Below are positions 453 to 62,537 of a DNA stretch of 64,000 nucleotides, piece after piece. The position numbers and the translations under genes are program-made. The notes under the pieces are model-generated. The model saw only the letters and a program-made list of their open reading frames with translations. It did no database searches and was not told the DNA's origin. The DNA is from Bugula neritina (lineage: Eukaryota > Animalia > Bryozoa): positions 8,938,698 to 9,002,697 of the forward strand of contig OZ037765.1 of the NCBI GenBank assembly GCA_964035545.1, in the 5' to 3' direction. Position 1 is the stretch's first letter. The number at the start of each line of letters is the position of its first letter.

Positions 453-3400
453 CTAACAACGGGGGGGGGCTTCTCCCACTCCGCCGGGGCTAGCCCAATA
501 CGGTTTCAAGCGAGACTCATTCTGGATAGATACCTGTCCTGAGCGCTCGATCTTGTACGTATGATTGGGCATAGCCTCGACGACCACGTAGGGGCCTACG
601 AACTTAGGCTTCAGCTTATCAGCCTGTCCGCGGCGCCTACGGTAATTGACCATCCACACCTTATCTCCCCTTTGATAGAGAGGGGGTTCATCGGAATCTT
701 CGTGCCGCACCTTCCACTGCTGTTGACGCAGTATATCGTGTGCGGCCTTCATCCGTTCCACTAGTTCACTGGCATACTCGTGAACCGAGTTGTCTTGCTC
801 TGGAACGTGATAGGTGAGATGGTCAGGGACACGAGTCTCTCTCCCGAGCATCAAGAGGTTTGGGGTCTCACCAGTACTGGTGTGTGGGGTGCTACGATAT
901 GCACGCATGACTTGCGGCAACACCGTATCCCATTCCTCTTGACCTCGTCCAAGGAGGAGACTCCGGAGCGCATCACCTAGCATCCGGTTGTTGCGCTCCA
1001 CCACCCCGTTACCTTGAGGGTGGTAGGGGGTGGTCCTGCTCTGATTTACTCCCCAGAGATGGCAAAGGTCGCTCATCAGTTGAGACTGGAATTGAGCGCC
1101 TTGATCAGAGTGTATCTGTTCGGGAATCCCAAAATAACAGAATACATGTTGGTCTAGTGCCCTGGCCACTGTTGGGGCTGATGCATCTGGGATAGCCAGA
1201 GCATCCGCCCACCTAGTAAAGTGGTCGGTTAGTACTAGGATCCAATTATTGCCTCTGGGGGTCAGGGGCATGGGTCCGACCAGGTCTACAGCGACTACTT
1301 GCCAGGGCCTACCAGCATATAGCCTCCGCCGTCCTGCTTCACCAGGGGGGCGGCTATGCTTACTGGCCTGGCAGATCTCACACTGTTTGACTCTGAGCCG
1401 GACGTCACGCTCCATCTGCGGCCAATACCATCGGAGTCGTAATTTGGATATCACTCGCTTGACCCCTGCGTGGGCCTGCTTGTGAGTATCCCAAATCAAC
1501 TCACGGCGGATGGCTGTGGGGCAGACTACCCTCTTCCTTTCCGGGTGTCTGACGCTGGCAGCTAGAGAGATGGTTAGCAACCCATCCTGCCCGATCCGCA
1601 GCGAGTCCCAACGCTGACAGTATAGCCGGAACTCGGCGCATCCCTGTCGTGTGCGTTCCTCGCTGGGTCGTCGCCCTTCCCTTTTGGCCCGGTATATGTC
1701 TGCCACGACTCCAGGCAGCTCTTCTTGGAGCTTCTTCAGCTCTCGAACATTACCGGCCAGTACAGGGTTGGCGCGGAGGTTTTGTACATCCTCCGGGGAC
1801 TCATCAACTCTTTGCCTGAGTTGACCTTGATCCCAGTCAAACGGCGCTCCGTGATGAGCCAGCGTCTCCAACTCGCATCGTGGGGGACCTCCATCCCTCC
1901 TCTCGATGTTGAGACACTGTTTGCAACCTCCGTCAGGTCGGCGACTCAACCCATCCGCATTGCTGTGTCTCTTGCCCGGTCGGTGTTCGATCCGGTACGA
2001 GAATTCAGCTAGGATTTCGAGCCACCGGGCGACCTGACTAGAGGGCTCTGCTCTCCTGCACAACCAGATCAGCGAGGCATGATTCGTACGCAGCCGGAAC
2101 TTCCTGCCATATAGGTATGGTCTGAAGTGCTTCACTGACTTGATTACTGCCAGCAGCTCCTTGAGGGTAGTGCAGTAATTTCGTTCAGCGGGAGAGAGAG
2201 ACTTGCTGTAGTAGGCTACTACTACTTCTCGGCCTTCCTGCACTTGTGACAGCACAGCGCCAACATTCTGGTCACTGGCGTCCGTGTCTAGGATGTACTC
2301 CAGAGTGGGGTCTGGGTAGGCCAAGATGGGCGCCGTTAGGAGGCAGCCCTTGAGGCGGTCGAACGCTTCTTGTTCGACTGGGGTCCACTGCCACGTCACT
2401 CCCTTTGCGGTAAGCCGGTTTAACGGCTGGGCTATGCCCGCAAAGTCTGGTATGTATTGCCTGTAATACCCTACCAGCCCCAAGAAAGCCCGGAGTTCGG
2501 TCAAGTCTTGGGGGGTGACCCAGTCTTCTACTGCCCGTACCTTCTCGGGATCCGTTGCCACGCCGTTTCGACCGACAACGTGCCCCAGGTACTTGACCTC
2601 CGGCTGCAACAGAGCGCACTTGGAAGGTTTGAGCTTAAGACCGGCACCTCGGAGTCTCTCGAAAACCTCCTGCAGACGACTGACATGTGTCTCGAAGTCT
2701 GGAGAGATTACGATGACATCATCGAGGTAGACCAGCAGTGTCTTCCAATGGAGTCCGCTAAGGACTTGTTCCATCAGCCTCTGGAAGGTGGCTGGGGCGG
2801 AGGTTAACCCGAAGGGCAGCACCTTCCACTTCCACAAACCGTCCCGTGTGATAAACGCCGCTTTCTCCTGGGCGTCGGGACTCAGAGGAACCTGCCAATA
2901 GCCGCTTAGCAAGTCTAACGTACTGAAGTACTTGCTGTCGGCTAGGGCGTCCAATGACTCGTCAATACGAGGTAGAGGGTAGGCGTCCTGTATGGTTACG
3001 CTATTGAGTTTGCGGTAGTCCACACAGAACCGCCAACTGCCGTCTTTCTTCCGGACCAGTACGACTGGCGAGCTCCACGCACTATGGGCGGGCTCTATCA
3101 GTCCCCGGTCCAGAAGATCCCGTACTTGTCGGCTAACCTCCTTCTCTTTCTCCGGCCCCAGCTTGCGCGTGGGCTGCCGGACAGGGACTGTCCCTGCAGT
3201 CAGCGGTATTTCGTGTCTGACAATTCCAGTCAGTCCCACGTCATGCTCTCCGCTGCTGAACACATCACCGTAGTCGCGTAGTAACTTAGCCATAGCTTGG
3301 CGTTCCCTGTTACTCGCGCAGCCGCCACTGGCTGTTTCATATAACTCCCGGAGATGTGTTGGGACTGCCCCTCGTCCCTGAATAGGGTGTCGAGGGAGTG

Positions 3401-4442
3401 CCTCTGTCGCATCATCCAGCGACGGGCCTACGTCTCCCTCCTGAACAGAGTGAAAACGGCCCAGCATCGACCCAGCCGGGAGCTTGATAGGCTCGGTAAA
3501 GGGGTTGACGCACTGCACTAAGATCTCCCCTTGCTCAGTCAGCTGATTCAGACTGCTGGCAAGTTGGATCTTTTCGTGCGCGCCTTTAACCACCCCGAGT
3601 CCAGAGATCCGGCTACTATTCACCCTGCAGTGAATGGTAGCCCGGGAGCGGCCTGGTATGGTACGGTTGCGTACCACTTGCACACCTCCCACTAAAGGGC
3701 AGCCGAACTTGTCGACGCAGGCGAGTTCCCGCCCGGACATCATCATTGCAGATCTGCTAAAATCTATGTGACATCCGTGCCGTTTAAGGAACGGCATCCC
3801 GAGGATAGCATCCTCCTTGAGCTGACTGACGATGAACGTCTCTTGGATCGGTTGATCGCGGACTCGTCCCGTCAGCTCAATTATACCATAGAAGGGAAGG
3901 CACGACCCGTCAGCTAGGGTGCCGTATTCCCCTTCGTATGCTTCCATCTCGCCCCTGACCCTAGCACTGAGGGTGTCGAAGAGTTGGCGGCTTAAGAGGT
4001 TTGTGGTACAGCCCGAATCAATGAGAAAAGTAACAGCTTTGCCTTCCAGTTTACCGGGCAAGAAATAGCTGTTCCCATGGGGCTGCACCTGAACTCTCCC
4101 TTCAGGCCTTACTCTCGCAGGGAGTACCTCCCTCGCTTTGGGTCGCGAAGGAGGTCTCTTGGGGCGGTGATAGGTAGGCCTCGGGGGTGCCGAGGCTAGA
4201 TTCTCAGCTACCTTTGTGTGCTCCCATCCAGATTCTTGGACTTGTAGCCCTGTGAATCTGTTGTGAAGGGGCATAGAAAAGGCAGCCGCGGGGCGAAGCC
4301 CCTTGCTGGTCCGTCGTGGCTGTTGCCACTGTTGGTTGCCAGTACGCGGTACCCGTCTGGGTGACCTGCGTTTCTTCTTCCCTAGAGGTTTCATCGTCGG
4401 CCCGCGGAAGGTGGGAACATCTGCGGGCCGCGGTAGTTTAAC
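453..4442 (-). CDS. pol: Gypsy Pol polyprotein (aspartic protease, reverse transcriptase, RNase H, integrase), probably expressed by -1 frameshift from gag
   Basis: LIDSGC (protease), RFCVDYRKLN and YLDD (RT), LDTDAS (RNase H), H..AHAG...C..C zinc finger plus VAVDLVGP / IHSDQG / VERNNR (DDE integrase), FVGPY (GPY/F). Confidence 0.96.
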   Translation of the reverse strand, partial: VKLPRPADVPTFRGPTMKPLGKKKRRSPRRVPRTGNQQWQQPRRTSKGLRPAAAFSMPLHNRFTGLQVQESGWEHTKVAENLASAPPRPTYHRPKRPPSRPKAREVLPARVRPEGRVQVQPHGNSYFLPGKLEGKAVTFLIDSGCTTNLLSRQLFDTLSARVRGEMEAYEGEYGTLADGSCLPFYGIIELTGRVRDQPIQETFIVSQLKEDAILGMPFLKRHGCHIDFSRSAMMMSGRELACVDKFGCPLVGGVQVVRNRTIPGRSRATIHCRVNSSRISGLGVVKGAHEKIQLASSLNQLTEQGEILVQCVNPFTEPIKLPAGSMLGRFHSVQEGDVGPSLDDATEALPRHPIQGRGAVPTHLRELYETASGGCASNRERQAMAKLLRDYGDVFSSGEHDVGLTGIVRHEIPLTAGTVPVRQPTRKLGPEKEKEVSRQVRDLLDRGLIEPAHSAWSSPVVLVRKKDGSWRFCVDYRKLNSVTIQDAYPLPRIDESLDALADSKYFSTLDLLSGYWQVPLSPDAQEKAAFITRDGLWKWKVLPFGLTSAPATFQRLMEQVLSGLHWKTLLVYLDDVIVISPDFETHVSRLQEVFERLRGAGLKLKPSKCALLQPEVKYLGHVVGRNGVATDPEKVRAVEDWVTPQDLTELRAFLGLVGYYRQYIPDFAGIAQPLNRLTAKGVTWQWTPVEQEAFDRLKGCLLTAPILAYPDPTLEYILDTDASDQNVGAVLSQVQEGREVVVAYYSKSLSPAERNYCTTLKELLAVIKSVKHFRPYLYGRKFRLRTNHASLIWLCRRAEPSSQVARWLEILAEFSYRIEHRPGKRHSNADGLSRRPDGGCKQCLNIERRDGGPPRCELETLAHHGAPFDWDQGQLRQRVDESPEDVQNLRANPVLAGNVRELKKLQEELPGVVADIYRAKREGRRPSEERTRQGCAEFRLYCQRWDSLRIGQDGLLTISLAASVRHPERKRVVCPTAIRRELIWDTHKQAHAGVKRVISKLRLRWYWPQMERDVRLRVKQCEICQASKHSRPPGEAGRRRLYAGRPWQVVAVDLVGPMPLTPRGNNWILVLTDHFTRWADALAIPDASAPTVARALDQHVFCYFGIPEQIHSDQGAQFQSQLMSDLCHLWGVNQSRTTPYHPQGNGVVERNNRMLGDALRSLLLGRGQEEWDTVLPQVMRAYRSTPHTSTGETPNLLMLGRETRVPDHLTYHVPEQDNSVHEYASELVERMKAAHDILRQQQWKVRHEDSDEPPLYQRGDKVWMVNYRRRRGQADKLKPKFVGPYVVVEAMPNHTYKIERSGQVSIQNESRLKPYWASPGGVGEAPPRC

Positions 4443-5344
4443 CCCTGATTTAGGAAGGGACAATATCGGCGGAAATGTCCTTGATTTCCGCACTCCCAGC
4501 AAAAACTGACTGTTTCTCCCTGTGGCGGCGCCGATGGCCGCATGGGCTCAGGGGCGGTACTCACTGGGTTTTGTGGTGTCAGTGTTGCTATCAGCTTGGC
4601 TAGCATGTCCGTCAGTTGAGTGACTTTTGATGCCGTCGCCAACTGGGACACGGCAGCCGCGGCGGAGGTTTCCTCCCCTTGTCCCGCGGCCGTGTCTGCG
4701 CGGTCTATCTCCACTTGGCGGGAGCTTCCGCGACTTTTATGCATTTGGTTAGCTAGGAGGTAAGCTTCCCCCTCAGTCAGAGCATCTTCAACGGTGGTGA
4801 CTCCCCTAGCTAGAAACTGGTGGTGGAGACCCAGATCGTCGACAGATGCTATGAAAGCGTCGAGGGTGTACCTCTCGCGGTTGACTGGGGGCAAGTCGCT
4901 GTACGCGATCTGTGCCAGCTTCATGACCGCGGCGGCATGCTCCCGCAGCGGGGTGCGGGGATCACGCCGCAACCTCTGCAATCTGGCCCTGGCATCTGTA
5001 GCAGAGAGGCCAAAGCGGGCCCGCAGAGAAGCAAAGATATTATCAATGTCTACGCCCAGCCCATATGGCTTGGCTTTGTCCATCAATGCCATTCTAAGCT
5101 TCAGCAGGGCCACCCTAGGGGGCCACTGAGCGACGTCCATTACGTCGCTAAACTCTTGGATAAATTGTTCCACCTCCTCTTCACCCGTGAAGGTGGGCGC
5201 CTTTAACCTGTAGCGGTCTTCAGCTAGTTCTCGCGGAACCCTTCGCTCTTCTACTACATGGTTAACAGGCATTGTCTCTACAGCATTGTCTCTACGCTCA
5301 CCTTCGATTGCCGGTGGTTGAGTTCCAGCATTTTCAGTCTCCAT
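4391..5344 (-). CDS. gag: Gypsy Gag protein
   Basis: 317-aa ORF starting just after the PBS; capsid-like LKAPTFTG motif and C-terminal CWECGNQGHFRRYC zinc knuckle. Confidence 0.93.
   Translation of the reverse strand: METENAGTQPPAIEGERRDNAVETMPVNHVVEERRVPRELAEDRYRLKAPTFTGEEEVEQFIQEFSDVMDVAQWPPRVALLKLRMALMDKAKPYGLGVDIDNIFASLRARFGLSATDARARLQRLRRDPRTPLREHAAAVMKLAQIAYSDLPPVNRERYTLDAFIASVDDLGLHHQFLARGVTTVEDALTEGEAYLLANQMHKSRGSSRQVEIDRADTAAGQGEETSAAAAVSQLATASKVTQLTDMLAKLIATLTPQNPVSTAPEPMRPSAPPQGETVSFCWECGNQGHFRRYCPFLNQGLNYRGPQMFPPSAGRR
4398..4442 (-). promoter_or_regulatory. Candidate -1 ribosomal frameshift signal: G_TTA_AAC, 5-nt spacer, 8-bp GC stem-loop
   Basis: Minus strand reads GGG TTA AAC TAC in the gag frame and GTT AAA CTA in the pol frame; CGGCCCGC and GCGGGCCG arms at 4423-4430 and 4398-4405. 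Confidence 0.7.
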
Positions 5345-6426: not shown

Positions 6427-6497
6427 GCTCCTGTGGCATAATGGTAGCACACTTGGTTGCCAGCCAGAGGATTCGGGTTCGATTCCCAGTGGGGGCA
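6427..6497 (+). pseudogene. tRNA-Gly(GCC)-like sequence (tRNA pseudogene or SINE head)
   Basis: A box TGGCATAATGG, B box GGTTCGATTCC, anticodon loop TTGCCAG, acceptor stem GCTCCTG/TGGGGGC with several G:U pairs, mismatches in the anticodon and T stems, TTTTT just downstream. Confidence 0.7.
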
Positions 6498-55130: not shown

Positions 55131-56402
55131 CTAGGAATTCGGGTCTAGTGAGAAATGCTCAGACATACGTTTTAACTGAGAAAGAGTACGTTTAACAGCT
55201 TCAAACCAGCCACAATGATCATAGTGTAAGTTGTACTCATGACAAACTTTTCTCACATATTCGGTAGCTTTGCGGTAATTGTGTCTCGGCATTCGAGGGT
55301 ATAAATGATGTACTAGATGGAAATTTAGTCCTCCATGAAACCAGTCCAACCATAGTGGTGTAATAATATCAATATTACTTTCTACCTGCATTTGTGCCCA
55401 GTTCACATCTTTAGAAACGTTTTTAACATGATGATAATCTTTCGCATAATGGCTAATTAGTAACTGTATGTGCAAGATTCCTTGTATAGTTGATGCTATT
55501 CCATAAAATATGAATACATGTTTCCATGTTGGAAGGTAAGAAAGAAGAACACAGATCCAAACCCAATGTAGACCAAATGCTGCCCACTCTATCAACCTTC
55601 GCTCTTGGACCATAGAAGCTTTAATAATAGCTAATCTACCCATAAAAACGCAAAGGGGAAGGAACGTTATATGCTGAATTCGAATCAAGAAGTACGACAG
55701 TTGATTTTGATAAAAAGGCCACAGCTTTTCATTTTGAGCCCAAACTACTGATTCCATCATTTGAGGATCAGCAAAACCTATATCATGGTCAACACATGTC
55801 GTCAGCGCATGATGAATAAAGTGCTCATCTCTCCACCATGATCCACTAATTCCAAAGCAAAATGTCCCAAAGAAAGTTCCTAGCCACTTGTCTATGTGTC
55901 TGTTCTGAGAGAACTGATTGTGCTCAAAGTCATGCATAAAAAATCCACACTGCTGCCAGAAAGCAGCAAGTGCAACGGCTCCCAGGTACACTCGGTCTGA
56001 AGTTGGATAATTAGTAACAATGTACACTACAGAACATATCAGTAAAAATGTCACCAAAAATTTCTTGGCATACCAATAATAATCCGTGATAAAATATCCT
56101 TCCTTCTCAAAATATTGGCCTAAGTGAGCAAAAGCCTGACTAACTCGACTGTTTTCAACAGTAGTTTCATTCATCCTAGCATAAGGCTTCCGGTGCCTCA
56201 ACACTGATTGTCTGTGAAATCCATGGAAGACTGCAGAAGCATCTTTTCCTACAAACTGTTCGATAACTTTTCCACCAGGATGATGGGGAATGAAGTTTGT
56301 AATGTCGTACCAGTATCCATCTATACCAATAAGTTTCTTTCCTTGCTTACTGCTTTTCCAATCATGAGAAGAGCTGGTTGCTTCATTTCCATTTCTATCC
56401 AT
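55131..56402 (-). CDS. Cytochrome b5-fusion desaturase 1 (sphingolipid-desaturase-like; His boxes HDFEH, HFIHH, HLVHH), no coding introns
   Basis: HPGG heme motif, three His boxes, WLDWFHGGLNFHLVHHLYPRMPRHNYR; single ORF, first ATG at 56402. Confidence 0.93.
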   Translation of the reverse strand: MDRNGNEATSSSHDWKSSKQGKKLIGIDGYWYDITNFIPHHPGGKVIEQFVGKDASAVFHGFHRQSVLRHRKPYARMNETTVENSRVSQAFAHLGQYFEKEGYFITDYYWYAKKFLVTFLLICSVVYIVTNYPTSDRVYLGAVALAAFWQQCGFFMHDFEHNQFSQNRHIDKWLGTFFGTFCFGISGSWWRDEHFIHHALTTCVDHDIGFADPQMMESVVWAQNEKLWPFYQNQLSYFLIRIQHITFLPLCVFMGRLAIIKASMVQERRLIEWAAFGLHWVWICVLLSYLPTWKHVFIFYGIASTIQGILHIQLLISHYAKDYHHVKNVSKDVNWAQMQVESNIDIITPLWLDWFHGGLNFHLVHHLYPRMPRHNYRKATEYVRKVCHEYNLHYDHCGWFEAVKRTLSQLKRMSEHFSLDPNS

Positions 56403-59400
56403 TTGATCATTGACTAAAATCAAACAACAGTTGTAGTAACAGCAGCTGGATTTGAAGCAGACAGTAATAGGCTGTGTATCAGCGATGCAGCTATGTTGCT
56501 ATAATAAAGGTAAAACATAAAATGGTTGCACTAAGTTGATCAACTATATTGCATTGTTATAGGACAATGTTTGGATATTGTTTGTTTAACGGTTGCTAAG
56601 ACTAACTATTCATCAAACTCACTCTTATCAAGTAGAAAATCTATAGCCTACACACATTTCAGCTAGTACGTAATTCAACTAGTTCAATAATTACAGATAA
56701 AGTTAGCAGCCATAGTAACTTTGTAGTCATAAAGTTGGCTAATAAAAATCAGCATCTAGTGTGGAAAATATATTTCAGTTTACAGGTCTTGTGGGGATTT
56801 CTTCTGAATATTATAATAGCACTTTTACTACATACTTACATACATGCTATTACTCATGCATGAAGACTATGGAGATTGCCGATTGAGTTATGTATGCAGA
56901 TATTTGACATTTAATTCAGTGAGCTATGACCTAGGATCACCACCAAGATTGCACTGTTATATATGTAGATATACCAGGTGCACGTATACAATGTTAATAT
57001 ATTATTATTGCATTGCTTCAACTATCGAAGTGATGAATGGAGAGCAACTATTGGTCACAGATTTATAAAAGAACAGTTTAGGAAATGTTATTGCACATTG
57101 TATCATATAGAATTGGCATAAAGCTTTTGGAATTATAAGCTCTATAAGTTTTACCTCTTTCCCCAATTTTGCAAAACCTTACCAAATCTTATTTCCACCA
57201 CATTTAAAATAACATTTTCCTGTAAGAGGCTTTTTTGAGATACTTTGAAAATTAGCTGTCATTCTAGCATATTAATTTCATTTCTCACATCTAACATAAA
57301 CTGCAACTTTACAGGCAGCTTTCCTCTTTTATTTCCGGCATTAAATGTTGAACTTGCACGATAGTTAAGTTAATTATTATAGTCACATACCTTCCCTATC
57401 AAACCTCCCAAAAGTCTGTAGAGATTGAATTCAATTATACTTTCATTAGAATATGATAGCAAGTGGTTATTATAGAAGCTCTGCAGAGTTGAATGATATC
57501 TCACTCATCATCGAGTTATATTTATTGATACAACAGATGTCAAAATACTTCCCTCTCTATTTATAGTACTCATATGACACTCCTACAAGGAAAATTTCTA
57601 GATGATTCTCTAACGTGATTCACACTGCAGCAATTTGTTGCCAAAAAGCAGGCAGCTACTGTCAAAATTCGTTTGTTACTTACTTTAATAATGAATGAAA
57701 ACTATCCCTGAATAAATAGCACTGCACTTACACTGAATGAAACGTTCTAGGAAGTTCCTAAGTGATAGAAAAGTGGGGCACACAGTGAAGGAGCCACTTG
57801 AAATGGGAATCTATAATTCTACTTTTATAAGTCAATTTATTTACCAGCATTCAGCAAGAGCAAGAAAATAGATTGGTTTAATATTAAAGGAGAAGTTGTG
57901 TACACTCATCAGCCGAGCATATAGCAGTACTTATGTCCCAACAATATTAGGATAAAATTGGGGGTATCTGATGTATTAACTTATAGCTTATGCCTTATGC
58001 CTATTACTATTACACCACGACTAAAGAAAATTATTTAATAATTATAATATCATGGTATACTAGTTTCATGATGGTATGCCTGTTGTAAAGAAGTAACCAA
58101 TCAACTTTGAGGACTGTGTGATATGGCTCAATGTCATGCAGTAAATATACTTTTACTGAGTCAGTTTTATCGAAGCCCTGCAACATCTTATGAACTAGTT
58201 ATCAGCAGTTTGTATAATAATTATTATAATAATTACGACAGGCCATGAAAGAAATTATGCAACTATGAGTTGTCCATAGTCTTGATATGTTTACGTTGTA
58301 TAGAAGTATCTATTTGATTATTTTTATTTGACCAAAAATTATGTCATTGAGCTAAAATAAATTTACTGCACCTTCTCTTTCTCAAAAAATACATAATATT
58401 TCAGTGTATTGAAATGGGATTGTGAATGCAACTTATACTATTTTAGCTCCCCCACCAAGAAACTTTTCTTGGTAAAAAAATAACCTTGGTGACTATCTTA
58501 ACTGTGTGATTAGTTGATCATGGAGGGCTCAATCAACTACACCAAGATTGATGACAAACAGACAATTTAAATTTTTCAGCTACTACAGAAATTACTAATC
58601 AATTAAGCCGCGACAATCTGGCTTTCGTCATTAAAAGAGGCTGATGGGCTTTGCAGTTATAGATTAGAAATCTAGTGATTATGGAGTTACATTTATAAAA
58701 GTTAAGACTAAAAAGAGACATGCAGCATGACATTTATTTACTTAATAAAATTGTCAGGTGTAGTCAATAGCAATTTATTTGTTTAGTAACTCAAGCTAAA
58801 CATTTGAACAAGCTTCAAGGTGATTGCAACTTGCTCACCTTTTCTATAACTTTTTGGCATTTAAGTTTATATATTAATTCCTTTTCCGATACAGCAGATG
58901 CTGTTTTCTTAATTCAATATACTATTGGAATGAAAAGAACTATTCAGCTAGTTTTAAGAAAAAAATAATGTGTTTTTGCAAGTGATCTAGTTTCACAGCA
59001 GAATTTTTTATATTGAGAAAATAGTGCATCCTTCAAGCTTTTATAAAAAAAAGTTACTTAATTAATTGACAATTGTGCTCATAAACAACAGCTAATGAAC
59101 ATTACTCTTATACTTCTTCATAATTTCATAGAAATGTGATTTGTAAAATTGCCTAATCCATGATACCAAGTTATTTGAGAGGATACTGTACCTGCATTTT
59201 TGATACTGTTTTGGAGTTATGTTCTTATGTTGCAATTATTTGCCAAAATTTGTAAAAAAAATAGTTTTTCCATATTTTAGCAGGTTTTTCTAATTTAATT
59301 CGGTCGGAAGCCGAATTTAGTATACACATGGCTAAACACAGCTAAAAAATTTTTCACAAAGGAAAAGTATGTGTCAATATGGTGTAATTATATTTACACT

Positions 59401-61304
59401 ATCAATTATAGAATTAGTAATGCTAAATTGTAAATATAACTAATAGATTAGTAGTAACCTAGGTAAGACAGAATGGTTGATGATACAACTTATATATATG
59501 AACATATATTATGAACAGTTTTACAAACCTACAGAGCCTATAGTTAAAACCAAAAAAATCAACTTGTGCTAATGTTGATTGGATTGGTAATTATAGGTGA
59601 GCAATAGGCAAATTTATTAGATTTATTCAGAGAAGTTTGTAGTTTTTTTGAAATGGGTGTTTTTTAAATTGAATACACAAGTCTGGGTTCCCCATTAATT
59701 AATGATTTTCAAGCCATGCATGCACACATATATAATTTAAATTATTACTTACCATCACCAAAAAGATTTCAATAAAACTCTCAGCTATTAAGAATTTACT
59801 TTTTGGGGCAGAATCAACAACCAATAAAGCTGCTGCAGGTACTTCATTCTACTAGTTGAGAGCACTATGAACAAACGGCTGTTCTAACAGTATTTTAATG
59901 TGTATGAATGGGAATATCATCACAAAAGATGAATAGAGAAAGATATCATCTTAATTACCATTTTATAATGCTAAAAACTAGACCGGTAGTATATGCATGG
60001 TCACAGTAAAATATTTAACCTTGATATGCAAACTGTATTTGATGGTAACTATTTTCTGCATATGATTAAACTTAAACTAATTCACTTTGCACACAATATA
60101 GATACCGCATTATGTCATTTTTTTGTGTTAAATTTTACAGATTTGTAATAATCAATAGTACCCCAGTCTACTAAAAGGCCTTTAGTAGACTTAACATTTA
60201 AAGGCACGAGTGTGGCAATTTGCCTAAGGAAAAAAAACTAATCAGAGTTTTGGTAAATTATGTTTTAAGATTCATAAATTGAGGTAAATTGCTTCACAGG
60301 TCTAAAAGGTGTCTGCTAATACAGAATGTAGCCAGTATGAATTTCTCTCAAGAATGATATATACATTTTCGTTTAGCTTGGGTTGTTAGTAAGATAGTGG
60401 AATTGCTACAAGTATTTGTTAGAACAATCACTGTTGAAATACACTACAACTTTGCGCCTTCATCTTGAATTTTTCATCTACATAAACTGTGTATGTAGTT
60501 GGTGTAAAAGTAATATTGACATTTTTTTAGAGTTTAAGTGCCACTTGCTCTAAAATATTTAGACAACAGGTGACAGCTACATCAGACATAGAAGTATTTT
60601 CAATTTAGTATGAAAGCTTAAGCTGTTCTTACTCAAAACATTTGAACTGGTAAGACAGTTTTTCCAGTAGCGACACTCATCAACACATAATATAATATAT
60701 TAGGTAGACTATCCATTATATTAAATGTATTCTCATAATAATATAAAACCATCATGTGTTAGAAGATGCAACAGTAACAGTAAAAATTATGCATAGAGTA
60801 TAAATGCTGTGACAGCTACAAACTTGGTGACCTTTTGTAAAAAGTTATTTATATGAAAGGTACTGGGTGGAAACATCAAATCTAATACCGAGCTTCACAT
60901 ATATACTAGTACTCAATTACGTAAGCTAATACTTCAATTTAAATAAGATGCAATCCTAAAAAAAATAAAAGCTAAAGTAACACAACCTAAAATGTATAAA
61001 ATTTCAAGTTACAAAATTTATAATAATTATCTACTTACTGGCTAATAACTATAAATCAACTGCTATAATACTGAAACACTTAATTGAAATTCAAAGAAGT
61101 ATCAATTAGTATACCTAATCAATTCCAAATGTGTAGGCATAACATAGTTTTTATACTAGTCCACTGCAGTGCATAGATTTATAATAATAATTACATTTCA
61201 GCAAGTGACAAAGCTAAATGATTATTTGCTAAATATGTTAGCAAAAGTGAGCACATGTTTGAAACTGAGCAAAATTTACAAACAGGAATGATGACTTTTT
61301 TTAC

Positions 61305-62537
61305 CTATCTTGGGTCTAATGAGAAATGTTCAGAAGTTTTCTGCAAGTGTAAAAGAGTTCGTTTTACTGCTGTTGACCACTCACATGAGTCATAGTGTAA
61401 GTTGTGGGCTTCGCAAAGTTTACGCACAAATTCAGTGGCCTGTCGAAAGTTATGCCGAGGCATACGAGGATACAAATGATGTACCAAGTGAAAATTTAGA
61501 CCACCATGAAACCAGTCCATCCACCATGGGGTGAGAATGTCAATGTTGCTTTCAACTTGCATCTGAAACCACCCTTTAGTAGTTTCTATATCTTCCACAA
61601 AGTGAAACTGCTTCGAGTAATGGCTAATGAGTAATTGGATGTGCAAAATACCTTGAAGAAATGCAGCAATTAAGTAAAACAATAACCTCTCTTTCCAGTT
61701 GGATAGTTGAAACAGTAATGATGCAGTCCAGATTAGATGCAAAGAAAAAGCAACAAGTTGCTTAGGGTCTCTCTCACTTTTCATAGAATCAATCATGATG
61801 CCTATTCTGCCCAAAATTATGCAAATTGGCAAGAAGGTTATGTGCTGAACCTTAATACACCAATATTTAATCTTGGATTGATAGAATGGGTATAACTTCC
61901 AGTTTTGCACCCAAACTGGTTCTCTCATCTGTGGATCAAAGAAATTAGTCTCATAATGAACACAGGCAGTCAATGCATGATGAACAAAATGATTATGCCT
62001 CCACCATGAGCTGCTAACTCCAAAGCACATTGTCGCAAAAAATACTCCAATCCAAGAATCCAAATTTCGATTACGTGTCAACTGGTTATGTTCAGCATCG
62101 TGCATAAAGAATCCACATTGCTGCCAGAAAGCAGCAAGTGCTATTGCTCCAAATAGGCGATACGGTGATTCAACCCAACAAACGAGCCCCATGCATGTGC
62201 CAAGCATACAAAAGGTTACTATTAACTTCCGGCAATACCAGTAATAATCCGTTTTAAAGTAGCCTTGTCGCTCAAACCATTCACCAAGATTAGCAAAAGC
62301 TTCATTAATGGCATCCAATTCATGATTTACTTGCACTTTGGCTACAGGCTTTCGATGTTTTAAAATAATTGGTTTATGGAAAGCCTGAAAAACTGCAGAA
62401 GCATCTTTTCCAACAAACCTGTTGATAGTTCCACCAGGGTGGTAGTCAATAAAATTTGTGATGTCATACCAATTCCCATCAACAGCTATTAGCTTCTTTT
62501 CCGTAATTCCAGATTCACATAGACCCTTATCACCCAT
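61305..62537 (-). CDS. Cytochrome b5-fusion desaturase 2 (paralog; His boxes HDAEH, HFVHH, HLVHH), no coding introns
   Basis: 410-aa single ORF with HPGG and WMDWFHGGLNFHLVHHLYPRMPRHNFR; colinear with desaturase 1. Confidence 0.94.
   Translation of the reverse strand: MGDKGLCESGITEKKLIAVDGNWYDITNFIDYHPGGTINRFVGKDASAVFQAFHKPIILKHRKPVAKVQVNHELDAINEAFANLGEWFERQGYFKTDYYWYCRKLIVTFCMLGTCMGLVCWVESPYRLFGAIALAAFWQQCGFFMHDAEHNQLTRNRNLDSWIGVFFATMCFGVSSSWWRHNHFVHHALTACVHYETNFFDPQMREPVWVQNWKLYPFYQSKIKYWCIKVQHITFLPICIILGRIGIMIDSMKSERDPKQLVAFSLHLIWTASLLFQLSNWKERLLFYLIAAFLQGILHIQLLISHYSKQFHFVEDIETTKGWFQMQVESNIDILTPWWMDWFHGGLNFHLVHHLYPRMPRHNFRQATEFVRKLCEAHNLHYDSCEWSTAVKRTLLHLQKTSEHFSLDPR

Follow-up and report, generated by a model that had tools for sequence, protein, structure and literature searches.

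Tandem cytochrome b5-fusion desaturases with histidine in the third His box, candidate sphingolipid delta-10 desaturases of the bryozoan Bugula neritina

Introduction

Which enzymes make the conjugated triene bases of marine-invertebrate sphingolipids? Sphingoid bases with double bonds at positions 4, 8 and 10 are a long-known hallmark of these animals, with reported bioactivities, and the literature records triene bases from starfish, an anemone, a gorgonian, squid and scallop. The question is raised anew by a stretch of DNA from the bryozoan Bugula neritina, 64,000 nucleotides long and called here the window (C1:8938698-9002697, in an assembly of 216 Mb and 321 contigs). Its minus strand carries two neighboring genes, geneA and geneB, that encode desaturases fused to cytochrome b5, and in both of them the third His box begins with His, where front-end desaturases carry Gln. 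An earlier note on the window, made from the letters alone, had proposed the pair as the animal enzymes for conjugated sphingatriene synthesis.

At least one of the two paralogs, so far as sequence comparison can tell, most likely performs delta-10 desaturation of sphingoid bases. We give this candidate function a probability of roughly 55%, because the only characterized member of the subfamily with His in box 3 is the sphingolipid 10-desaturase of the diatom Thalassiosira pseudonana. The strongest circumstantial support comes from the animal itself. The ceramides of B. neritina are reported to include 4E-monoene, 4E,8E-diene and unmethylated 4E,8E,10E-triene bases (PMC4012440), which is the series one would expect from the successive action of DEGS, a delta-8 enzyme and a delta-10 enzyme.

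According to a 2018 paper, b5-fusion sphingolipid desaturases "have yet to be identified in metazoan taxa" (PMC6010785). The searchable literature holds no description of an animal enzyme for either the delta-8 or the delta-10 step, nor any occurrence of the phrase "sphingolipid 10-desaturase". As annotation, the delta-10 idea is not new: automatic RefSeq names already apply it to proteins of other phyla. The Bugula proteins themselves are publicly annotated as "hypothetical" or "FADS3".

Results

Domains and motifs

The two minus-strand open reading frames (ORFs) run from 55131 to 56423 (430 aa, counted from a TTG) and from 61305 to 62537 (410 aa, from an ATG), and their products are 58% identical over 406 residues. 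Pfam recognizes Cyt-b5 (PF00173) in geneA and geneB with E values of 2.5e-11 and 1.1e-09, respectively, and FA_desaturase (PF00487) with E values of 9e-35 and 4e-32. On reading the motifs, we find in geneA the heme-binding HPGG at 56271-56282, His box 1 (HDFEH) at 55920-55934, box 2 (HFIHH) at 55809-55823 and box 3 (HLVHH) at 55305-55319, all on the minus strand. The corresponding minus-strand positions in geneB are 62430-62441 for HPGG, 62088-62102 for box 1 (HDAEH, identical in all five residues to that of the T. pseudonana delta-10 enzyme), 61977-61991 for box 2 (HFVHH) and 61476-61490 for box 3 (HLVHH). This is the set of motifs that the earlier note had described, and its coordinates for box 3 were exact. 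Both box 3 sites are embedded in a DWFHGGLNFHLVHHLYPRMPRHN context and are encoded by CAT (C/T)T(A/G) GTA CAT CAT, within FHGGLNFHLVHHLYPRM.

With an N-terminal b5 domain bearing HPGG and with three His boxes in a four-helix membrane desaturase domain, both proteins are cytochrome b5-fusion membrane desaturases, and neither has lost the b5 motif or any of the eight histidines that bind metal in desaturases. Both depart from the QxxHH of canonical front-end desaturases, with HLVHH in its place. A motif set of this kind lies far beyond chance and belongs to intact, conserved genes. An AlphaFold2 model built on a 62-sequence alignment (predicted local distance difference test, pLDDT, 92.8; predicted template modeling score, pTM, 0.90) combines long paired helices with a small b5 domain, and the best matches that Foldseek returns from PDB are the desaturase-like subunit of the Ycf2-FtsHi complex (8xqw_M), AlkB and many b5 domains. 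The predicted structure and its matches fit the general b5/desaturase fold and are silent on regiochemistry. A feature search of the ESM Atlas returned generic b5/desaturase clusters only and nothing on taxon range.

Gene structure and expression

Contigs from four studies of RNA-type runs (X1, X3, X4 and X5) lie on both genes. The coding part of geneA is a single exon, and spliced contigs from three studies attach it to upstream noncoding exons. Exon 1 of the 5' untranslated region (UTR) has a minimum extent of 57732-57797 on the minus strand (contig pieces 57731-57797, X3 and X5). It is followed by an intron of 149 nt with canonical GTAAGT...AG ends at 57583-57731 (joint 57581/57731, cut +1, X3 and X5 contigs) and then by exon 2 at 57391-57582, whose 3' end is approximate (a GTATGT donor at about 57390). 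The contig pieces for exon 2 cover 57416-57581/2 (X3, X4, X5), and further letters match the window to about 57391. The 34 letters at the contig joint were considered as a separate exon, but they find no match at three or fewer mismatches and are instead a diverged continuation of exon 2. Beyond the acceptor AG at 56415-56414, the spliced contigs of X4 and X5 place the last part of the 5' UTR, 56403-56413, within the coding exon. The TTG at 56423 thus falls in the region of an intron acceptor, so the coding sequence (CDS) of geneA begins at the first in-frame ATG, 56402, and occupies 55131-56402 (minus strand, 423 aa plus stop). Since geneA is a spliced gene, contamination or a dead retrocopy is disfavored.

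Two further observations concern the 5' end of geneA. An out-of-frame ATG at 56410-56408 (minus strand), 8 nt upstream of the start and within the spliced leader, may open an upstream ORF overlapping the coding sequence. Unspliced contigs (X1, X3) also cross the acceptor, which suggests alternative 5' ends.

GeneB likewise has a single coding exon, 61305-62537 on the minus strand (410 aa plus stop), and unspliced contigs from four studies cover 61038-62049. Its 3' UTR extends over 60713-61304 at the maximum reach of the contigs (X1, X3, X4, X5): the contig pieces begin between 60713 and 61053 and run colinearly into the CDS, those other than the longest stopping at about 61040-61050.

Each gene has a counterpart among public B. 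neritina proteins. The cluster of P0008, to which geneA is 98% identical, includes KAF6040487.1 ("hypothetical protein"), and geneB is 96% identical to P0001, whose cluster includes KAF6040489.1 (partial, 235 aa), labeled "FADS3". That label is not backed by geneB-type features, namely the His of box 3 and matches free of Fads proteins. The two orthologs lie on the same 169 kb contig of an independent B. neritina assembly.

Constraint and surroundings

The ratio of nonsynonymous to synonymous substitution rates (dN/dS), computed against orthologous contigs (L012 for geneA, L011 for geneB), is 0.079 for geneA (dS 0.11) and 0.098 for geneB (dS 0.16), and both genes are therefore under strong purifying selection. 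Between the paralogs dS is saturated, which makes the paralog dN/dS comparison uninformative. Because of that saturation, and because the lineages of geneA and geneB each hold several other sequences in the tree described below, the duplication is old.

The other ORFs of the window encode a protein kinase, an actin-like fragment, a RING finger and a Ty3/gypsy polyprotein, all on the same contig, and the surroundings of the pair are therefore ordinary animal chromatin. GeneA and geneB are genuine, expressed and constrained bryozoan genes.

A His-type subfamily

A word-based search gave 104 matches to geneB. Those that carry names come from Bryozoa (Watersipora), Brachiopoda (Lingula), Annelida (Owenia), Platyhelminthes (Macrostomum), Priapulida, Cephalochordata and Tunicata, and beyond animals from diplonemids, Telonema and diatoms; no Fads1/2 protein appears by name among the 104. 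In every readable homolog down to P0093 (about 90 proteins from animals and protists), the first residue of box 3 is His, in the context GGLN(F/L)H..HH. The next tier of matches, P0094-P0101, has the delta-8-type GGLQ(F/Y)Q..HH. The His of box 3 is therefore best taken as the signature of a subfamily (His-type, as opposed to Gln-type) rather than as a peculiarity of the two paralogs. The earlier note had seen in the shared deviation a sign of selection on two otherwise diverged proteins. The constraint is evident (dN/dS of 0.08-0.10 with 58% identity), but the deviation is not private to the pair, being invariant across the subfamily. What is specific to the bryozoan clade is the combination of HDxEH in box 1 with HL(V/I)HH in box 3; elsewhere in the subfamily the usual forms are HDFMH and HIEHH.

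A maximum likelihood tree of 84 rows, with animal Fads1/2/3 not among them, was built with IQ-TREE under LG+C20+F+G4 with posterior mean site frequencies (PMSF), with support from the ultrafast bootstrap (UFBoot) and the SH-like approximate likelihood ratio test (SH-aLRT). The His-type proteins are split from the Gln-type, delta-8-like proteins with support of 100/100. The bryozoan HL(V/I)HH clade, 17 rows that include geneA, geneB, a third Bugula paralog (L002) and Watersipora, is supported at 100/100. The wider clade in which it nests, supported at 95/95, also takes in Lingula X2, Priapulus, Owenia, Macrostomum and, unexpectedly, diplonemids. The diatom clade that contains the characterized enzyme is monophyletic (100/100) and lies on the His-type side of the split. 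Family-level homology of geneA and geneB with the diatom delta-10 enzyme is thus firmly indicated. When the diatom clade was held with the Gln-type proteins, the approximately unbiased (AU) test gave p 0.418, a value that speaks only to diatoms as the first His-type branch; as a test of diatom nesting inside the Gln-type enzymes it was discarded, since the bipartition only describes diatoms branching first.

The tree also places proteins of four diplonemids (P0046, P0051, P0056 and P0068, from Flectonema, Diplonema japonicum, Rhynchopus and D. papillatum) inside an otherwise animal His-type clade (95/95). This placement could stem from gene transfer between the two groups or be an artefact of sampling. 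Another surprise is P0091 from the fly Condylostylus longicornis (318 aa, partial, annotated "acyl-CoA 6-desaturase-like"), which has HQVHH at box 3 in a DWFHGGLNFH context and is 51% identical to geneB over a third of geneB. It would be either an unexpected arthropod member of the family or a contaminant of the C. longicornis assembly.

Glutamate in the His boxes

Each of 65 His-type proteins examined (65/65) has Glu in at least one of three places: position 4 of box 1, position 3 of box 2 or position 3 of box 3. It is in box 3 only (HIEHH) in 35 of them and in box 1 only in 17, all of them bryozoan; seven, the diatom delta-10 clade, have it in boxes 1 and 2, five in box 2 only, and one in boxes 2 and 3. 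No rule of this kind holds for the Gln-type proteins. HDxEH, together with D333, is common to the bryozoan and diatom delta-10 clades; at these positions M and N are found in 90-95% of the remaining members. Bryozoans and diatoms share two of five clade-specific residues, against one of five in a chordate control, counts that are too small to weigh. The Glu of box 3 has been lost about 2-3 independent times, and at such counts a sign test cannot reach significance. The sharing of HDxEH and D333 may be convergence linked to function, or chance; we take it as a weak extra hint.

One might go further and suppose that in bryozoans the Glu moved from box 3 (HIEHH to HL(V/I)HH) to box 1 (HDFMH to HDxEH), in parallel with diatoms, and that its new position sets delta-10 regiochemistry on unmethylated bases. 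We regard this as speculative and unlikely. If it were true, another function would fall to the widespread animal proteins with HDFMH and HIEHH that bear the name "sphingolipid 10-desaturase", and the three Bugula paralogs would represent a lineage-specific invention of sphingatrienes, possibly with divergent products.

Pathway partners in the genome

A six-frame scan of the whole genome with PF00487, which gives a lower bound for multi-exon genes, found three His-type genes, one Gln-type gene, DEGS-like copies and a FADS6-like gene. The third His-type gene, L002 (C5:1117364-1121137; ORF 1417-2697, minus strand), is a single coding exon of 426 aa with HDFEH, HFIHH and HLVHH; the tree makes it the sister of geneA, and its B. 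neritina counterpart is KAF6036555.1. The Gln-type gene, L004 (C3:32375154-32378987; ORF 1360-3078, minus strand), is also a single coding exon and encodes a b5-fusion desaturase with HDIGH, HETHH and QVIHH. It groups with proteins named delta-8-sphingolipid-desaturase-like and with a Watersipora ortholog; the Glu usual in box 3 is missing from it, as from several other Gln-type proteins. L004 is the likely candidate for the delta-8 partner. DEGS-like loci are present on C3 and C63.

Of the partners that the earlier note had suggested seeking, a delta-8-like gene was found, with DEGS besides, but a whole-genome search for the CMAS family (PF02353), to which sphingolipid C9-methyltransferases belong, gave no match. 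No obvious Fads1/2-type gene emerged from the PF00487 scan, in which multi-exon genes may be missed.

Two of the loci call for separate remark. The second DEGS-like (delta-4 desaturase) locus, L005/L010 at C63:58863-62737, lies on a small contig and has stops within the match; it could be a copy with introns, a haplotig or a pseudogene. The FADS6-like gene, L006/L008 at C1:34108898-34113459, has multiple exons, no detected b5 exon and a His in box 3 (CHIEHHLFPTL). A kinship of the b5 fusions with FADS6 was considered and dropped, as the similarity of exon L006 to either type is only remote (local, E about 1e-10).

Other features of the window

A Ty3/gypsy-type retroelement occupies 453-5344 on the minus strand, with an uninterrupted pol ORF of 1349 aa (protease, reverse transcriptase, RNase H and integrase) and an upstream ORF of 317 aa without a match in Pfam. 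The element is richer in GC (about 56%) than the remaining window (about 33%). Just beyond it, at 6427-6497 on the plus strand, is a borderline Rfam match to tRNA (29.9 bits, against a gathering score of 29).

Discussion

The proposed pathway may be put as follows. GeneA and geneB are functional tandem duplicates, encoding desaturases of the endoplasmic reticulum membrane in which a fused cytochrome b5, with its heme at the HPGG site, would hand electrons to a catalytic di-iron center held by the three His boxes. At that center a ceramide or glucosylceramide would lose two hydrogens from its long-chain base. With the delta-4 bond put in by DEGS and the delta-8 bond by the Gln-type delta-8-like enzyme, the substrate would be d18:2(4E,8E), and at least one of the paralogs would insert the delta-10 bond to give the conjugated d18:3(4E,8E,10E) that is reported for B. 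neritina. The substrate, the regiochemistry and any division of labor between the paralogs are read from sequence and should be taken as provisional.

The earlier proposal of a delta-10 enzyme stands to the extent that geneA and geneB share a subfamily with the diatom enzyme (the 100/100 split) and that their host is reported to contain trienes. Several considerations weigh against it. The phytoplankton on which Bugula filter-feeds includes d18:3-making diatoms, so its trienes could be of dietary origin. Three paralogs are more than a single reaction needs. Identity between the diatom enzyme and geneB is only 35%, and the diatom clade sits on a branch of length 1.73, with the base of the His-type family supported at only 16/0 and 62/38, so that orthology between the bryozoan genes and the diatom enzyme is uncertain. 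No echinoderm, mollusc or cnidarian homolog is named among the 104 matches to geneB, and to speak of "the animal enzymes" for sphingatrienes, as the earlier note did, was therefore too general. Finally, regiospecificity shifts between close relatives among b5-fusion desaturases, as the delta-10 and delta-8 enzymes of Fusarium illustrate (PMC4440215). Nor is the His of box 3 a mark of delta-10 chemistry as such, to judge from the delta-8-like character of the Fusarium delta-10 enzyme and from the HIEHH of the FADS6-like gene.

If the delta-10 assignment fails, the pair may yet be sphingoid-base desaturases of another regiochemistry (delta-8, for example, or some new position) or desaturases of another sphingolipid substrate, with L004 or another enzyme, or none, making the delta-10 bond. 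We consider this unlikely, though it fares best among the alternatives. The His-type family is sister to the delta-8-like enzymes and has the DWFHGGL context in common with them; its single characterized member is on a long branch; and many animal members with HDFMH and HIEHH come from taxa without recorded trienes, suggesting a broader ancestral role. On the other hand, a dedicated gene of Gln-type, delta-8-like character is already present in the genome, the nearest characterized relative is a delta-10 and not a delta-8 enzyme, and the triene series of Bugula needs a delta-10 step.

Slightly less probable is that geneA and geneB are fatty-acyl front-end desaturases (of delta-5, -6 or -8 type) that supply polyunsaturated or non-methylene-interrupted fatty acids. 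They have the overall architecture of such enzymes, the public annotation calls one of the B. neritina proteins "FADS3", and a pair of acyl desaturases might fill the place of the Fads1/2-type gene that did not turn up. That gap, however, comes from a six-frame scan that sets a lower bound, and a multi-exon Fads may have been missed. Moreover, the 104 matches include proteins named "sphingolipid 10-desaturase" and no named Fads1/2. The characterized acyl front-end desaturases have Gln in box 3, the QxxHH rule that the earlier note had invoked and that is stated in PMC5215697 and PMC6010785, but geneA and geneB have His.

Membrane di-iron desaturases and hydroxylases can be interconverted by few changes, and at least one paralog could have changed its chemistry altogether, to that of a hydroxylase, a conjugase-like enzyme or a modifier of the N-acyl chain. 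The bryozoan-specific changes do lie beside metal ligands (M to E in box 1, IE to LV in box 3), and the bryozoan clade has expanded to at least three paralogs. Such an enzyme could explain the novel 3'S-hydroxy acyl ceramides found in B. neritina (PMC4012440). We think this improbable: the eight histidines that bind metal and the b5 motif are still those of a desaturase, and the Glu of box 1 is present also in the diatom enzyme, a desaturase.

That the ORFs are non-functional retrocopies, contaminants or horizontally acquired DNA without a role in the animal, as intronless coding regions in an intron-rich genome might suggest, is contradicted by their place within the 216 Mb assembly (C1:8.94-9.00 Mb, beside kinase, actin-like and RING ORFs), by the spliced 5' UTR exons of geneA, which RNA contigs of three studies join across a canonical GT..AG intron, by dN/dS values of 0.08-0.10, by the orthologs on one 169 kb contig of an independent B. 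neritina assembly, and by the nesting of the bryozoan clade among animal sequences.

The reading we prefer is that at least one paralog makes the delta-10 bond of sphingatrienes. The locus brings an old gap in the sphingolipid biochemistry of animals within reach of direct tests and provides a set of genes for the purpose (three His-type, one Gln-type and DEGS), in a genus with the full series of 4, 4,8 and 4,8,10 bases. That 4,8,10-trienes occur in marine invertebrates, as the earlier note stated, is borne out by reports from B. neritina (PMC4012440), starfish, squid and others. Since the His-type family is seemingly absent, among the 104 matches, from several of the phyla that produce trienes, it would not be the whole answer for animals.

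Comparison with related desaturases

The desaturases most familiar from animals, Fads1/2/3 and the Fads of echinoderms and molluscs, share with geneA and geneB the b5 fusion, HPGG and three His boxes. Among them, FADS3 is a sphingoid delta-14Z desaturase. They carry QxxHH in contrast to the HLVHH of geneA and geneB, and the characterized sea-urchin Fads are Gln-type acyl desaturases (PMC5215697).

Closer in substrate are the Gln-type sphingolipid desaturases of plants, fungi and algae, which together with L004 form the sister group of the His-type family and share with it the b5 fusion, the DWFHGGL context and, presumably for L004, the class of sphingoid-base substrates. They differ in having GGLQ(F/Y)Q..HH and HDxGH and in lying beyond the 100/100 branch. 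The delta-10(E)-sphingolipid desaturase of Fusarium graminearum (FGSG_09845) is a b5 fusion that desaturates a 4,8-diene base at 10,11, as is proposed for geneA and geneB. It is 55.7% like the delta-8 desaturase, less than 20% similar to the diatom enzyme, and needs the C9-methyl group (PMC4440215). In this last respect Bugula is different, as its triene bases are unmethylated (PMC4012440) and its genome has no CMAS match.

Within the His-type subfamily, the homologs of Lingula anatina, Priapulus caudatus and Branchiostoma floridae have the same architecture and are 42-51% identical. Their automatic RefSeq names, "sphingolipid 10-desaturase(-like)", trace to the T. pseudonana protein in cluster P0112. 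They have HDFMH and HIEHH, whereas the bryozoan clade has HDxEH and HL(V/I)HH and at least three paralogs.

The reference for the proposed function is that T. pseudonana protein, P0147 = Q4G2T3 (DESAT_THAPS). Its delta-10 activity is taken from its UniProt name and from Michaelson et al. 2013, as that work is cited in PMC4440215. Q4G2T3 is about 100 residues longer than the Bugula proteins, with an insert after the b5 domain, and its boxes 2 and 3 are HREHH and HYSHH, compared with HF(I/V)HH and HLVHH. The earlier note had described a diatom enzyme distinguished by His in box 3, and HYSHH bears this out. Like geneA and geneB, the protein has an N-terminal b5 fusion, the His of box 3 in a GGLNFH..HH context and a place on the same side of the 100/100 split, and its box 1, HDAEH, is identical to that of geneB. 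According to PMC4440215, the diatom enzyme also acts on C9-unmethylated bases, and unmethylated d18:3(4,8,10) bases are reported for both hosts, T. pseudonana (PMC4440215) and B. neritina (PMC4012440).

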